Assembly: GCA_965649825.1 (NCBI GenBank)
Contig: OZ287710.1
Span: 372,001 to 436,000 of the forward strand
Source of the DNA: Penicillus capitatus
Taxonomy: Eukaryota; Plantae; Chlorophyta
Length of the DNA stretch: 64,000 nt
Reading direction: 5' to 3'
Shown: piece after piece, positions 23,245 through 38,266 of the stretch
How positions within the stretch are numbered: position 1 is the first letter of the stretch
How the letters are laid out: each line of letters begins with the position of its first letter
Translations under genes and position numbers: made by a program
Notes under the pieces: model-generated
Seen by the model: only the letters and a program-made list of their open reading frames with translations
Databases searched by the model: none
What the model was told of the DNA's origin: nothing

Positions 23245-24035
23245 TCAGCAACAGGAGGACTTCTGAACAGGTCTGTTTGAGGAATCCAGAGGCAAAGGGG
23301 GGTTCGGAGGCACGACTTGGACTCTTGGTAATCTTTCAGCAATCTGTTCAAACAAACGATCCACGTTTGTTCCATCTTTTGCCGATGTCTCCATAAAGAA
23401 CAGTCCATTCTCGTCCGCATACGTCTGAGCCTCTTCCGTGGACACGCGACGGGTATTGCTATCATTCTTGACCAAATCACATTTATTCCCGGCCAAGGCC
23501 ATGATCATGGCTGCATTGCCAGTCATCTGTAGCTCCTTCACCCACTTTTTCGCTCGAACAAAGCTCTCGGAGCTGGAGACATCATAGACCAGTATTGCTG
23601 CAGCTGCTCCTCTGTATACCACAGGGGCGACCGACCGAACGGTCATGCAATCGGTACATCAAAGGTGTATTGGATGTACCTGTAGTACATAGGAGCTAGA
23701 CTGTGATATCTTTCCTGTCCAGCTGTATCCCTATCAAATAGACAATAGATCCTGAAGGTCTCTGTGGCATTGAAACGTGACCGACCAGATTTCAAATTTG
23801 ACGTTGTGTTCTGGGAGGAGCTTTGTCAAGAAAGCGGCGCCAATTGTCGACTCCTACAGATAAGACATGTCAAAGTGCCGAATCGTATTCTCGCACTTGT
23901 TTAGACGCTGGTACGCACTTGATAGTCGAAAAACTGTCCTTTTACGAACCGAAGCACCAAGCTTGATTTGCCGGAACCCATCTCTCCGAGGAGCACCAGC
24001 TTGGCGGAGTGTTGTTGCGCGAGGTCCGGCATCAT
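23245..24035 (-). CDS. RAB5: Rab5/RabF2 GTPase
   Basis: [64 protein letters not shown]-terminal CC. Confidence 0.96.
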
Positions 24036-24240
24036 CCACTGAGAACGCACCGTAAATGAAACTGAGAACGAACGAACAAACACACAAGCAATGTGATGCA
24101 AAGACGAGAACAGTTCGGGCCGCACAAACAAACATCAGCATGATGACGTAAACATGTTAGATCCATCCGCCAGCTGAGTCACGTCATCTGCGTTCATTTT
24201 TGCCCGGGGCAGTCAAAGTGCCTGTCTCACAATTTTGCAG

Positions 24241-26358
24241 ATGTTTGCTGATAGACCTCTTTCGCAAACGCGACCTACACAGTCGCTCTCACGCAACTCC
24301 GTGGTGCACCGATGTAGATCCAGTAGTGGAAGGCGGCGTTTGTTCGTTCGATCGGTGGCAATGCCCATGCAGCCGCCCACTTCGAAACCTGCAAAGCGCA
24401 GCAAGGTGGAGACCATTAAAGAAAGAAGTGATTTTTTGCGCCATCCTTTGATGCAAGAGCTCGTCAACGAGAACCCATATATCAACGAAGAAGCCATGCA
24501 GCTGATGAAATTCCATGGAAGCTATCAGCAAGACCATCGAGAGAAGCGCGCTTTTGGACAGGGAAAATTCTATCAGTTCATGATGCGTACTCGACAGCCC
24601 GCCGGAAAAGTGCACTGGCAACTTTACGTGGTGATGGATGATCTGTCCGATCAAGTGAGAGCAATGATTGATATCGAGTCGTTTGTCATTTTCTGAATGC
24701 TACCGCAGTTTGGGAGTGGGACACTTCGACTGACCACGAGACAGACGTTTCAATTGCATGGTGTTCTGAAACAGGATCTCAAAACAGTCTTCTCGACGGT
24801 GATCAAGAATATGGGTTCTACTTTGGGCGCATGTGGAGATCTGAATCGTAACGTCATGGCTGCATGCGAAGTCTATGCGAATCGACCCGAATATCAGCAC
24901 GCGGCCAGATATGCAAGAGACATTGCGGATCTCTTGGCACCCCAGTCTGGTGCCTATTACGATGTCTGGTTGGACGGCGAGAAATTTGTTTCCGTCTACA
25001 AAGAGGTAAGAAGGAAGCCTACACAGGCGGATGGAGCAGTCAGCAAGATACTGTTCTTCTTCTAGGATCCAAAAGTGACAGCTGACCGTGCGTTCAATCA
25101 GCATGGGACGAATTTTGATGCCAGTCCTGAACCCATCTATGGCACGCAGTTCTTGCCGCGGAAGTTTAAAGTCGCTGTGACGGTTCCTGGAGATAACAGT
25201 GTGGATTTGCTGACCAATGATATCGGCGTTGTGGTTATGTGCAACGATCAGGGTGAGCTTGAAGGATTCAACATCTTGGTTGGTGGAGGAATGGGACGTA
25301 CACATCGTAACGAGAAAACATTTCCTCGATTGGCCGATCCTCTGGGCTATGTTCCCAAGGATGATATATTCCACGTCGTCAAAGCCATTGTCGCGACACA
25401 ACGTGATTATGGCAGACGAGACGATCGCAAATATGCTCGAATGAAGTATTTGGTTGATGAGTGGGGAATTGATCGTTTCCGCAAAGTGGTGGAACAGTAC
25501 TACGGAAAGGAGATGGAGCCCTTCAAGGTTCTCCCAGCTTGGGAGTACAAGGACTATCTGGGATGGGGAGAACAAGGAGACGGTAAGCTGTATCATGGCA
25601 TCTTCGTGCAGAATGGACGCGTCAGAGGTGGAATCAAGAAAGCGATCAGAGCAGTCGTCGATAAGTTCAAGCTGCCCACCATCATCACCCCCAACCAGAA
25701 TATCATCCTCACAGATATCGAGCCAAAGTGGAGAGAAGAGATCAATAAAGCACTGGCAGACGGGAAGGTGGCACCCGTGGAGGATGTCCACGCCATCGAT
25801 CGTTTGTCTATGGCCTGCCCTGCATTGCCGCTTTGCGGTCTGGCCATTGGCGAAGCAGAACGTGCCCTTCCAGATGTGAACAATCGTATCAAGAAGCTCA
25901 TGGCAAGTACTGGAATCGAAGAGGTTCCTGTCGTTGTTCGGATGACCGGATGTCCTAATGGCTGTGCTCGTCCATACATGGCTGAGCTGGCGTTTGTGGG
26001 CGATGGAGCCAATTCCTATCAGGTATGGGTGGGCGGCGATGCTCATCAGACACGTCTCGCTCAAGTCTACAAAGAACGTATGAAGATTGGAGACCTGGAG
26101 TCTGTCCTAGAGCCTTTGTTCTTCTACTACAAACAGTCTCGCGATGTGAATGAAGGATTTGGAGATTTCTGTGCACGAATCGGTATACAGGAGCTTCAAG
26201 AATACGCAACGGGCTACATCCCTTCAACCAAGAGACCTGCATTGCCTGGAGTGAAGGTGGATGATGTCGTTCTGGAGAGATTGGAGGCCTTGGCGAAGAC
26301 GCAAGGAAAGACGGTGGATCACTTGGTCAACGACATGCTTCAAAAGATGTCGGGTTGA
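24241..26358 (+). CDS. SIR: Ferredoxin-dependent sulfite reductase, plastid
   Basis: [38 protein letters not shown]. Siroheme/Fe-S ligands CPALPLC and TGCPNGC. Two introns. Confidence 0.97.
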
Positions 26359-26413
26359 GTGTGTGGCAGAACAGATTTTGTAGACGTTGAACCGTTTGAC
26401 AATTGTCAGTGCC

Positions 26414-34589: not shown

Positions 34590-34924
34590 CATTCAAAAGA
34601 TGTGACGGTGGATAACCGTAGGTTTTATTGAGTCGGATGGTCAGACATTCGCGGAAACATCCGATTTTCGTATTCCAACTGGAGCACCCAGTGGTTTGAG
34701 TCGTGAGTTTGGTGGCGACACATCTTCTCGAGTGGTTTCTCGACCACCAGCTGCTTAGCCGTTAGCTTTTTTAGTTCAGACTTCTATTCCTTTACACAGT
34801 TTCGGTCGGGCTTTACGGAAAAGAGGTGACAAAACATCCGTTTCCAGAGACAGTTTACGGTCCTTCTAGCAGTTGTGGAACAATGGAATGGCAAGCCATC
34901 TGTCATCACCTCCGTTGAATTGAG

Positions 34925-36737
34925 AATCACTTTATACGATTTGGAAGTTGTCAAGAGGCACTGAGCGCAACACGTTGATCGCTTTTGAAGCACTCGCATT
35001 TTACTTTTGGAAGTGGAAACCTGGACAGCATTATTTTCATGTCCATGGTTTCTATCTCATGACAGAGTTCGATGGTTCTTATGCAGTCCCGACTCGATGG
35101 ACATAGTTTTTTGATTATCGTGTGTTGGTCTCTTCTCTGCAGAAGTGGTTAAACATTCGCATAAATGGACATGGGCATGTTGCATTGCGTGAAATCTTGG
35201 AAATCATCGTGCCAGACGTAAGCCCGTTCCATCTGCTCAGTATGCAGAATCCCTCCAATCGCGGCGTCGCCTACCATGGATGCATCGTCCTGTCGCGCGC
35301 AATGGAAAAAGTTTTGCTCGTCAAGCCACAAGGATGTCCGTCGTGGTGCTTTCCACTTGCAACTGTGCTGCCTTCTTTGCGAAGCAAAGGATCGTATGAT
35401 CGGCGCATTTCTTAGGACAAACGAACGAACGGCATCGAAGCCGCAGCAAACGCCGTCCACGATCAGACCGGCGTTCATGTACTCGACTCGATAGATCCTG
35501 ACGTCTTTGTTGAGGTGCGTCGCCACACGTGCACTGGGGCCGTTGGCGGACTTTCCGAACTGTGAGTGAGACAGGTTCCTTTTCCTCCAGGGGCTTCTGA
35601 ATTGGCCCGACTGTACATCGTCCACAGTGCTCCGAAGAAAACGTCATCTCCTTCACAATACTCGACGATCGAGGAGGTCGCATGGAAAGATTTTAGACCA
35701 ATTCTAGAACTCCCAGATGGTACGCCCTTCGAGGAAGAGTCAGTCATGCCCTTCTTGAAGGATCTTCGTCAATGGGTGTTGAGGTATAGTAGTAATATTT
35801 CGGCTGATCCATGCCAAAGTGCGTGTTCTTCCAGACATCACCATCTTCGGGCGAGGGGGGACCCGCAACTCGGCAGAATCATTTTGTTCAATCGCCGACA
35901 CCACTCTGGAACTCTACCGAGATCTGTTTTGGCCTCTGCTCTTCAAAACAACGACGTGTGTTGCCCTCTTTTAATGATATTATTCGGTATTTGAGGCAAG
36001 AATTGTGTTCAGTTGCCCGATGCAGAGTATACGATATTCACGCCTTCAGAGGTCATGCATGCAGACGATATGGTTCCACGCTTCAGTCAACCAACATTCG
36101 CATGCACCCTTACTCTTTCACACTTAAACCTTGGTCTGACACCAGGTGATTTTTTTGATCTAATGCAACGGGCATGAGAACCATGTGATAGAGATTTGCT
36201 ATCTGGATGAAGAAGATGCGAAGGAAATGGCAGCCATGAGTGGCATTCTATATCTCTCTGGCGGCATCGACCAGCACTCAAACTACTTTCATTTTGCCCC
36301 AATGCGAAGTTCTCCTCCGCACAAGCCTTTCTGGAATGAGATGGTTGTCCTCTGACGGTTGGCATTCATGTCATTCCTTGTGCTGTTAGGTAGCAGAGTA
36401 TGCAAAGAGATGCAGAGAAGGTGCTCTGCTGAACGGGAACATGAGTTATTGGCAGAATCCCGGTCACGACATGATCCCACGCAGCAGTGTTCTCCAATAC
36501 AAAAGCAGTCTCAAGACATCTGTCTCGGTCCTGGAAGACTTCTGTACCAAGAAGAACTTCACGATCAAATTTGAATTCGAGGTTAGGTCTAAAGGATTCA
36601 TCGGATTGATCACTATCCCTGAACTGGGACTCAATCGGTTTGATGGAGCACTGAAGGAACACAAGCGTGACGCCAAAGAGAATGTGGCCATGATGATGTT
36701 GGACATGTTGAAGGAGAGAGGGATGTACGTTGTGTAA
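34925..36737 (+). CDS. DCP2-like degenerate Nudix domain fused to two dsRNA-binding domains (5' end unresolved)
   Basis: GCIVLSRAMEKVLLVK..SWCFP..ARLYIV..IEEVAW parallels DCP2. Introns 35365-35415, 35784-35834, 35956-36012, 36146-36191 and 36344-36389 are phase-consistent and join two dsRBD-like units. Confidence 0.65.
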
Positions 36738-36784
36738 CCGGCTCGACATACGGTTTCTTGTATATACCCGTGACAACGACGCCC

Positions 36785-38266
36785 ATGTTTCGAAGTCTCA
36801 CGCTTCTCCGTCGCTGCATCGCGACCTCTTTCACCGAGGAGAGACATGTTTCACTGACGGTTATGCTTGAAGCGACCTTGGGTTCACGCAAGTGCTGGCT
36901 GGCGCAGACGGTGATAAAATCGGGCAGTTTGGCCCCAGTGACGCCTCGCGCCACGCAGTACTTGCACGAATGGAAGAAATCGCGTGCTCCCAACGGACCC
37001 CTAATCTCGGCTGCCATTCAAGAAGCAATAAAGCTGAAGAGATTATCTCCCATTTTTTGGAAGAAGTTCAAACATGGACCGTTTAAACCCGAACAGCTCA
37101 AAGCTTTGGACATGAGAACTTTAACATTCCTCTACTATGGACTCTGCTACTTCTCCTCCAATAACCTTTTTCCTGAAACAGTGAGACACGCCATCTGTTC
37201 TTTTAAGGCGAACGATGTGGATTCAGGAAAAGAACGCGGAAGGCAGACATCTTGCATCCAAAGTACTGGAAGAGATCTTAAGTCTGGATCGGTTTCTGCA
37301 GTTTGATAACAGGCAAGTTGCATTGCGTTTGCTTCTGTACTTACCAAATACGCCAAAACCATTGTAGACTTACTGTGTCTCATGTCTTGCTTGGCATGGC
37401 CATGACAGACGACGTGGACTCTGAACGCCTACAGAGAATGAGTTACAAAGTCATGAGTCGAGTGAAGCGATTGCATCCTGAAACTCTGGTCGATGTGCTG
37501 TTCTCATGGGCAAGGCTGGAGTGGGATAAGGCAGAAGATTTGGTAGTCCTGTCCGAAGAGGCGAGATTGCACAAACAGTTCGTTTCTGCAAAGCACCTTG
37601 CACAAGTGGGTTTCCTGTTGTCGTCATGCTCGTGGTTTAACGTCTGTGCCTAACGTGCAGGGTATTTGGGCATGGACGAAGATCGGTCACACATTTGAAG
37701 AACACGTAGATGAATTCCTTACCCAACTCGTAGAGAGTGAGAAGGTGAAGGATCTGTCGGCCAATGACATAGGTTTAGTTCTCTCATGCGCCGGACAGTC
37801 GAATTTGAACGATCAACTGCAGCACGTCCTTCGTCATTTCTTCTCAGAATTTGATCTATCAGAGTGCGATAGTTCTGATCTTATCAGGATATTCATTGGA
37901 ATGGGACGGTTACCTTCTCAGGAAGCCAGTGCATTGAATGCTCTGATTGAGGAACTGGGAACGTTTCGCTGCCTCCGCTGGTTTCGAGCATCTGATTTTG
38001 TGTCTGTATTGAATACATACCTCATCACAGGAGCAAAGAACGACGCTTTTGTCGATCGATTGGCTTTCGAGGCTGGACAGGCCAAAAAAATGGCTCAGTA
38101 CTCAGTTAAAAGTCTATCCAGAATGCAAGAGATGTTATCAGATGTGGGGATGCAGAAGAATGTCATTCAGATCTTTGCAAACGAACTGTCGCGGAGAGAA
38201 AAGTCACTGAGAGGTACAAGTAGACGAGGTGGCCTGTCCCATGACGCCGATGAGCAACCGAAGTAG
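36785..38266 (+). CDS. Organelle-targeted helical-repeat protein (OPR/FASTK-like, putative RNA-binding)
   Basis: Arg/Ser-rich presequence. Repeated units such as PETLVDVLFSWARL, AKHLAQGIWAWTKIG, SDLIRIFIGMGRL. Confidence 0.55.

Follow-up and report, generated by a model that had tools for sequence, protein, structure and literature searches.

A predicted chlorophyte protein family that joins a catalytically degenerate DCP2-type Nudix domain to a divergent and a conventional double-stranded RNA-binding domain

We analysed a 64,000-nucleotide (nt) stretch of the Penicillus capitatus genome (assembly GCA_965649825.1, contig OZ287710.1, positions 372,001 to 436,000; hereafter the window), and in it a gene whose predicted product joins a DCP2-like Nudix domain, devoid of its catalytic residues, to two segments with the fold of a double-stranded RNA-binding domain (dsRBD1 and dsRBD2). 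An earlier note on this DNA had proposed a gene with a degenerate Nudix box and two dsRBD-like segments at this locus, and the spliced open reading frame (ORF), phmmer searches, AlphaFold2 (AF2) models and profile comparisons recovered all of them where they had been placed, far beyond chance. A three-frame reading of 34.9–36.7 kb gave a single uninterrupted ORF of 394 amino acids once six GT-AG introns were spliced out, with a coding sequence of seven exons at 35242–36737 on the + strand and a stop codon at 36735–36737. The introns are, in order, 51, 60, 51, 57, 46 and 46 nt long (Table 1). The five introns of 46–57 nt that had originally been proposed are all real, but the 60-nt intron was needed in addition; its splicing creates the motif PFPPGAS, which matches EFPAGSG of the Ostreobium relative described below. 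A 72-nt version of this intron (35519–35590) gave a slightly better alignment to human DCP2, yet it was rejected, as both of its splice sites are mutated at an orthologous locus (L003), where those of the 60-nt version are kept. Since introns of 54 and 69 nt interrupt the window's own ferredoxin-type sulfite reductase gene, lengths of 46–60 nt are the local norm.

The gene had been proposed to span 34925–36737; the part from 35242 onwards is coding, while the first 317 nt are not, as judged from the L003 indels and from where the related proteins start. Upstream of the ATG at 35242, three indels (4, 2 and 1 nt) set L003 apart, and its counterpart of a 57-nt pseudo-intron (35086–35142) has neither GT nor AG. 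Because these indels break the frame and the pseudo-intron splice sites are lost, we regard 34925–35241 as the 5′ leader. N-terminal extensions, either from 34924 through the 57-nt pseudo-intron or from an ATG at 34883 or 34888 through an intron of 54–56 nt, were rejected on the same frame-breaking indels and lost splice sites, and relatives begin at the Nudix fold. Identity of the leader to L003 is 78% over 34924–35085 and 91.6% over 35090–35220, the latter value being above that of most introns. Just ahead of the start codon lies an upstream ORF (MDMGMLHCVKSWKSSCQT, then stop) that has the same length in L003, with 15 of 18 residues identical, and several further upstream ATGs are also conserved there. 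The conserved leader and upstream ORF may serve translational control.

L003 was reached through an 87%-identical fragment (P0003) found in an exhaustive phmmer search, and lies on a 959-kb contig of the ENA metagenome assembly ERZ26696514. It is collinear with the window over 2.4 kb at 85.8% nucleotide identity, and encodes an intact 394-amino-acid protein that is 86% identical to the window protein. Exon identity is 84–93%, with zero indels across all seven exons, while intron identity is 59–78%, except for the last intron at 91%. The L003 counterpart of intron 2 is 57 nt long as a result of separate +1 and −4 nt indels, and that of intron 3 carries a 4-nt deletion. GT-AG is kept in five of the six intron pairs; the remaining one (L003 4088–4133, counterpart of intron 5) has the donor CAG/GCATTT and is GC-AG in L003 against GT-AG in the window. 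Nei-Gojobori analysis gave a synonymous divergence (dS) of 0.357 and a non-synonymous divergence (dN) of 0.072, with a dN/dS of 0.20 overall and regional values of 0.21 for the Nudix domain, 0.32 for the linker and dsRBD1, 0.11 for the middle segment and 0.105 for dsRBD2. Since the exons are free of indels, the introns carry 1- and 4-nt indels and dN/dS is 0.20, the locus holds a functional gene that is subject to purifying selection, not a pseudogene. The last intron, with 42 of its 46 nt identical, is conserved to an unusual degree; its retention would lead to a stop after ...FWNEMVVL and to an isoform without dsRBD2, and its regulated retention is possible.

Table 1. Features of the locus and of neighbouring genes in the window (nt positions of the window).
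Feature	Coordinates	Strand	Remarks
Ferredoxin-type sulfite reductase gene	23300..26360	+	in-frame introns of 54 and 69 nt, GT start, AG end
5′ leader, non-coding	34925..35241	+	holds the first 'exon' of the earlier note and the 57-nt pseudo-intron 35086–35142
Upstream ORF, 18 codons (MDMGMLHCVKSWKSSCQT, stop)	35165..35221	+	conserved in L003
Exon 1: start codon and first Nudix beta-strands (MQNPSNRGVAYHGCIVLSRAMEKVLLVKPQGCPSWCFPLAT)	35242..35364	+	ATG kept in L003, zero indels; aligns to DCP2
Intron 1, 51 nt, GT-AG	35365..35415	+	in-frame TAG inside; splice sites kept in L003; 76.5% identity
Exon 2: Nudix helix with degenerate box	35416..35514	+	NAVHDQTG at 35449–35472; NAVNDQTG in L003
Intron 2, 60 nt, GT-AG	35515..35574	+	GAG/GTGCGT...GACAG/ kept in L003
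Exon 3: remaining Nudix fold including Box B-like helix (VMPFLKDLRQWVLR)	35575..35783	+	aligns to human DCP2 LARLYI...PFIRPLRDWLSRR; no L003 indels
Intron 3, 51 nt, GT-AG	35784..35834	+	47 nt in L003 (4-nt deletion); 58.8% identity
Exon 4: RHxxLR family motif, linker, dsRBD1 helix alpha1 (LPRSVLASALQNND)	35835..35955	+	family alignment, AF2, L003 comparison
Intron 4, 57 nt, GT-AG	35956..36012	+	splice sites kept in L003; 77% identity
Exon 5: dsRBD1 beta-strands, long beta1-beta2 loop (AEYTIF...PTFACTLTLSHLNLGLTP)	36013..36145	+	AF2 strands E185-189, E209-215, E220-224; motif C.TC.LPHLGVQ.TPE
Intron 5, 46 nt, GT-AG	36146..36191	+	frame shift needed for joining; 63% identity; GC-AG in L003
Exon 6: dsRBD1 helix alpha2 (EEDAKEMAAMSGILYL) and conserved extension (GGIDQHSNYFHFAPM...PFWNEM)	36192..36343	+	AF2 helix 231-246; hhalign against dsRBD2 profile; HEN1 dsRBD match 9e-4
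Intron 6, 46 nt, GT-AG	36344..36389	+	frame shift needed for joining; splice sites kept; 42/46 identical
Exon 7: linker, dsRBD2 (about 36519–36716, SVSVLEDFCTKK...HKRDAKENVAMMMLDML), stop codon	36390..36737	+	family profile matches; AF2 pLDDT 88–92; dN/dS 0.105
Next gene downstream, several ORF pieces	36758..38266	+	no Pfam match
Single-exon ORF, 411 amino acids	40495..41730	−	signal-peptide-like start; 'choice-of-anchor I' domain (Pfam E 1.8e-38)

The Nudix domain was compared with known structures by sequence and by fold. A phmmer search of the PDB matched Dcp2 catalytic domains only, with human DCP2 at E 9.5e-11 and the Schizosaccharomyces pombe, Saccharomyces cerevisiae and Kluyveromyces lactis proteins at about 1e-7 to 2e-6. 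In agreement with this, the first 25 Foldseek matches in the PDB were all Dcp2 (target-normalised TM-score 0.44–0.83), and other Nudix hydrolases appeared only afterwards. The AF2 model, built on a family alignment of seven sequences, had a mean predicted local distance difference test score (pLDDT) of 69, with most of the Nudix core at 75–87; a single-sequence AlphaFold model (pLDDT 33) was unusable. The helix of Box B is recognizable, PFLKDLRQWVLRH lying opposite PFIRPLRDWLSRR of human DCP2, and within it PFLKDLRQWV corresponds to PFIRPLRDWL. On these grounds we assign the domain to the DCP2 subtype by descent; the earlier note had called it DCP2-like.

The catalytic box, in contrast, is degenerate. 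In the phmmer alignment NAVHDQTG stands opposite REVFEETG of human DCP2, and the metal-binding glutamates of the intact Nudix box (GX5EX7REUXEEXGU) are missing in every one of the seven aligned family proteins, among them that of the window, so that their loss, reported in the earlier note, holds for the alignment, the fold comparison and the family as a whole. The REUXEE positions read NAVHDQ in the window protein and SVVDKQ, SVVHNQ, LIAEQV, NLAREA, GIVWDF and SAVQSL in the relatives. Opposite D57, the one acidic box residue of the window protein, the relatives have K, N, Q, E, D or S, and the general-base position of Dcp2 is T in the window protein and is not conserved in the family. The N-terminal regulatory domain of DCP2 (Box A) gave no Pfam DCP2 match, even with an extended model of 477 amino acids, and BLAST found no match to residues 1–95 of human DCP2; this domain is absent from the window protein and from every relative, all of which start at the Nudix fold. 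Since the protein lacks an intact catalytic box as well as the regulatory domain, each a defining feature of DCP2, it should not carry a decapping-enzyme annotation. Compared with DCP2 (NUDT20), the catalytic subunit of the mRNA decapping complex, the protein thus shares the DCP2-subtype fold and the Box B-like helix, but lacks the Box A/Dcp1-binding domain and the general-base Glu, and has two dsRBDs in place of the disordered C-terminus.

At the other end of the protein, dsRBD2 occupies about residues 323–388. AF2 placed the alpha-beta-beta-beta-alpha elements at H319-330, E335-341, E344-351, E356-364 and H367-384. A profile built from eight family sequences matched Loquacious (1.8e-12), DCL4 (2e-12), R2D2 (5.7e-12) and TRBP (2.5e-6), and also DRB2, PACT and HYL1. 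The Pfam search proposed for the spliced product had a divided outcome: the window sequence alone stayed below threshold (Dicer_dimer 0.0016, DND1_DSRM 0.012, dsrm 0.09 at 13.8 bits), while the relative P0118 scored above the gathering score of Pfam dsrm (PF00035; 33.5 vs 23 bits). The window dsRBD2 alone matched a poxvirus dsRBD at 0.013. Among the RNA-contact motifs, alpha1 has LED (the alpha1 Glu) and alpha2 starts with KRDAK, for which the relatives have K-x-(A/S)-K; the loop-2 histidine of GPxH is missing in the window protein and in its relatives. Profile matches and model together give good support to dsRBD2 as a predicted conventional dsRBD with K-x-x-K in region 3.

The middle segment, dsRBD1 (about residues 172–250), is more divergent. 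Structure prediction, which the earlier note had suggested as a check, returned alpha-beta-beta-beta-alpha for both dsRBD segments, in this case with H168-178, three strands separated by a long beta1-beta2 loop, and H231-246, at a pLDDT of about 66–84. When the dsRBD1 family profile was aligned with that of dsRBD2 by hhalign, the five elements fell in full register (E 5.4e-5, probability 66%). In the PDB the dsRBD1 profile matched the HEN1 dsRBD and, at 0.03–0.06, that of Dus2, and a HEN1-type dsRBD2 model reached about 0.003–0.008. With Pfam dsrm, P0063 scored E 0.0012 and P0011 0.049, each under the gathering score. The KKxAK motif for dsRNA binding is replaced by EEDAK in the window protein and by QESAI and IDEAV in relatives, which makes region 3 acidic. 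The fusion of two dsRBDs to the Nudix domain therefore stands for dsRBD2 by profile and model and for the fold of dsRBD1 by model, whereas dsRBD1 is divergent and without the KKxAK lysines. It is probably a divergent dsRBD for which canonical dsRNA binding is doubtful and, because acidic residues sit at the positions of those lysines, it more likely serves protein interaction than the binding of dsRNA alongside dsRBD2.

Past helix alpha2 of dsRBD1, the segment 36219–36343 (AAMSGILYLSGGIDQHSNYFHFAPM...PFWNE) combines strong conservation (the dN/dS of 0.11 given above) with low AF2 confidence, and resembles a single Kelch blade of KLHL17 and of designed SAKe propellers. A Kelch-repeat reading of AAMSGILYLSGGIDQHS was rejected: the SAKe propeller and KLHL17 matches in the PDB are summed matches of about 5 bits to six identical blades, AF2 predicted a helix for this stretch, and one blade does not make a domain.

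The relatives were collected by searching 1.84 billion representative proteins exhaustively with phmmer, and this search, together with a cluster look-up, defines the size and taxonomy of the family given here. Most of the 117 matches at E ≤ 1e-3 were canonical DCP2, one of them being P0013, which has Box A and reads REVYEEIGF, and about 17 were relatives of the window protein; beyond these and a few repeat artefacts, only canonical DCP2-like proteins were found. The artefacts (P0002, P0010, P0012 and P0019) are repeat proteins in which a tandem motif (ILKIRDGTPFEAE) matched ILELPDGTPFEEE by chance. A search for the architecture among relatives, also suggested beforehand, recovered the same layout in Ostreobium quekettii, in Sanguina aurantia and in two transcript-derived EukProt proteins. 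The protein of Ostreobium (Ulvophyceae; P0119, 418 amino acids) has the full or nearly full architecture, and its NCBI fragment CAD7698016.1 is automatically named 'Nudix hydrolase domain-containing protein' in UniRef; that of Sanguina (Chlorophyceae; P0063, 'hypothetical protein') and P0038, from a Logan assembly, have the architecture common to the family, and P0033 has dsRBD1 and dsRBD2. P0011 and P0118 are ORFs of Trinity-assembled EukProt transcripts with all three domains on one mRNA, so that the Nudix and dsRBD parts, which the earlier note had wanted to see on a single transcript, are joined in this way in the family, an outcome obtained on the relatives.

Family members begin a few residues ahead of the first Nudix strand, and none has the catalytic glutamates. 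All named members are chlorophytes, the closest being the ulvophyte Ostreobium with 41% identity over the Nudix part. As conserved signatures, RHxELR follows Box B, dsRBD1 contains C.TC.LPHLGVQ.TPE and ENAAL..LLYL.G..D, and dsRBD2 contains KNAIQ.LKE.CDK. By alignment, these proteins are a small conserved chlorophyte family with the same predicted architecture throughout. The linker between the dsRBDs (alignment A1, columns about 430–445) bears, in most members, a P-x-KR-x-R motif that looks like a monopartite nuclear localization signal; the window linker is far shorter, with AKRCRE at about 36408–36425 and its KRCR at a different place. A scan of JGI metagenomes with the last exon gave no relatives, the BFVD viral fold library gave Nudix hydrolases only and no Nudix-dsRBD fusion, and in the literature we found no description of a Nudix plus dsRBD/DSRM architecture. 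The earlier note, too, had not recognized it, and we consider it an undescribed, lineage-restricted combination of familiar domains.

Several known systems offer comparisons. Tandem-dsRBD partners of Dicer have two or three dsRBDs and no other globular domain, and are physically associated with Dicer. It is exactly against these proteins (Loquacious, R2D2, TRBP/PACT and plant HYL1/DRB) and the C-terminal dsRBDs of DCL4 that the dsRBD2 family profile scores best. The layout is similar as well, with one RNA-binding dsRBD and one degenerate dsRBD likely to serve protein contacts, and dsRBD1, whose region 3 is acidic, is reminiscent of the dsRBDs through which TRBP, PACT and Loqs bind proteins. 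In contrast to Dicer partners, which have no Nudix domain, the window protein has one ahead of its tandem dsRBDs and the degenerate dsRBD comes first. In Chlamydomonas, DUS16 is a dsRBD cofactor of DCL3 and the only algal dsRBD cofactor tied to Dicer. Both it and the window protein are dsRBD proteins of green algae that are confined to a lineage and carry an unusual additional domain related to RNA; DUS16 works with Dicer. It reportedly consists of an RNA recognition motif and one dsRBD (Yamasaki et al., 2016); it differs in having this motif, a single dsRBD and no Nudix domain, and was compared by its description.

For the Nudix part, CFIm25/NUDT21 is a catalytically inactive Nudix protein that binds UGUA RNA, and NUDT16L1/TIRR is a dead paralogue of the decapping enzyme NUDT16. 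Both follow the same logic, in which a Nudix fold is no longer catalytic but survives as a module for binding, in TIRR even one derived from a decapping enzyme. They belong to other Nudix subfamilies and have no dsRBDs, so the analogy is functional only; neither the NUDT21 nor the NUDT16 subfamily appeared among the phmmer PDB matches or the Foldseek matches listed.

Taken together, these results point to a functional nuclear gene for a three-module protein that is probably a non-enzymatic RNA-binding adaptor, a reading to which we give a somewhat better than even chance; a Dicer-partner-like setting is its most probable context. As to RNA binding, partners and pathway, we infer the following. 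The protein would act as a non-catalytic adaptor whose dsRBD2 binds an A-form duplex, while the dead Nudix domain, through the basic Box B and the conserved RHxELR, would contact flanking RNA or a partner protein. In Dcp2, the basic Box B region contacts the RNA body, as known from structures and mutagenesis. dsRBD1 would mediate a protein-protein contact, and the whole may assist in the processing of dsRNA or small RNA as a cofactor akin to Dicer partners. We rank such processing first and regulation of decay second because dsRBD2 scored best against Dicer partners and a Dicer-like protein.

Several points weigh against this interpretation. The dsRNA affinity of dsRBD2 could be modest, given the missing GPxH histidine. 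No sequence search brought dsRBD1 above threshold, and the AF2 model, from seven sequences, is of moderate quality. The gene model at the window locus was built from genomic sequence and orthologue comparison alone, the idea of a Dicer partner draws on a single source, the best-scoring dsRBDs in the family-profile search, and no RNA interference gene was present among the ten largest window ORFs scanned against Pfam.

A more specific version of the Dicer-partner reading, which we put forward tentatively and hold to be possible rather than probable, is a chlorophyte-specific cofactor of RNA silencing or dsRNA surveillance, in which the core of a decapping enzyme was exapted as a non-hydrolytic reader of the 5′ region and wired to a dsRBD pair of Dicer-partner type. 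If true, the processing of an RNA as dsRNA would be tied to its 5′ status, and this would add a new class of partner to the Dicer/dsRNA pathway.

An adaptor that senses the cap or the 5′ end, as the earlier note had suggested, would use the dead Nudix domain to read the 7-methylguanosine (m7G) cap or 5′ phosphates and so couple 5′-end status to dsRNA recognition. The domain descends from a cap-directed enzyme and retains the Box B-like helix and the conserved basic RHxELR. However, the phosphate- and metal-binding glutamates are gone, and the m7G pocket of Dcp2 is composite, being formed jointly with the N-terminal regulatory domain in structures of Dcp1-Dcp2 with cap analogues; such complexes, with a cap analogue or m7GDP, were among the Foldseek matches (for example 5kq4, 5lop and 6am0). 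Because that pocket needs the regulatory domain, which neither this protein nor any relative has, cap recognition in the manner of Dcp2 is unlikely, and we regard the cap-sensing part of the proposal as weakened and an adaptor of this kind as improbable.

A regulator of mRNA decay seems to us decidedly improbable. Such a DCP2 mimic would compete for, or scaffold, decapping cofactors or substrates in P-body-like granules, with the dsRBDs directing it to structured mRNAs; the fold is DCP2-specific, and a pseudoenzyme often regulates the active enzyme of which it is a paralogue. However, the surfaces known to bind cofactors, namely the regulatory domain (Dcp1, Edc1/PNRC2) and the C-terminal helical leucine motifs (Edc3), are missing.

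Very little speaks for an active hydrolase with non-canonical residues, which might remove 5′ phosphates or a cap from dsRNA. D57 keeps one box position acidic in the window protein, but the general-base position is a non-conserved T and, because no acidic box residue is conserved across the family, residual activity is most unlikely.

An artefact, either a decaying pseudogene or a Nudix remnant and an adjacent dsRBD gene wrongly joined by imagined introns, is largely refuted and the least credible of all, since although the window-locus model is known from genomic DNA alone and prokaryote-style gene calling on the contig (493,524 bp, ENA metagenome assembly ERZ25074695) gives fragments only, the L003 exons are all in frame and free of indels beside introns that are not, selection is purifying, the relatives' assembled transcripts carry all three domains, and the introns fit the style of the genome.

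Little is known about the cofactors that serve RNA silencing and mRNA decay in green algae, and this family is a concrete candidate for a missing algal cofactor of a dsRNA pathway or of decay. It also offers a clean example of a Nudix pseudoenzyme kept as a binding domain, and the curated gene model and family alignment are now available for proteins labelled only 'Nudix hydrolase domain-containing', 'hypothetical' or 'unnamed' in databases.

The surroundings of the gene are those of a photosynthetic eukaryote. The window has about 48% GC, its ORFs are broken by short introns, and an Rfam scan of it gave no match. Typical genes are those for a PsbP-family protein (with a transit peptide of primary-plastid type and an RR motif), a DUF1995 protein, the ferredoxin-type sulfite reductase, a PHO4 phosphate transporter and an amine oxidase. 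The type of transit peptide, taken with the closeness of the protein to that of Ostreobium and the chlorophyte origin of all named members, suggests that the gene comes from a chlorophyte green alga. The 'choice-of-anchor I' domain of the single-exon ORF on the − strand is known mainly from bacteria; this ORF is syntenic on the orthologous contig (L003 7552–8297) and is possibly an old horizontal acquisition. The repeats of the next gene downstream look, by eye, like the FASTK/OPR-type helical repeats of algal organelle RNA-binding proteins.

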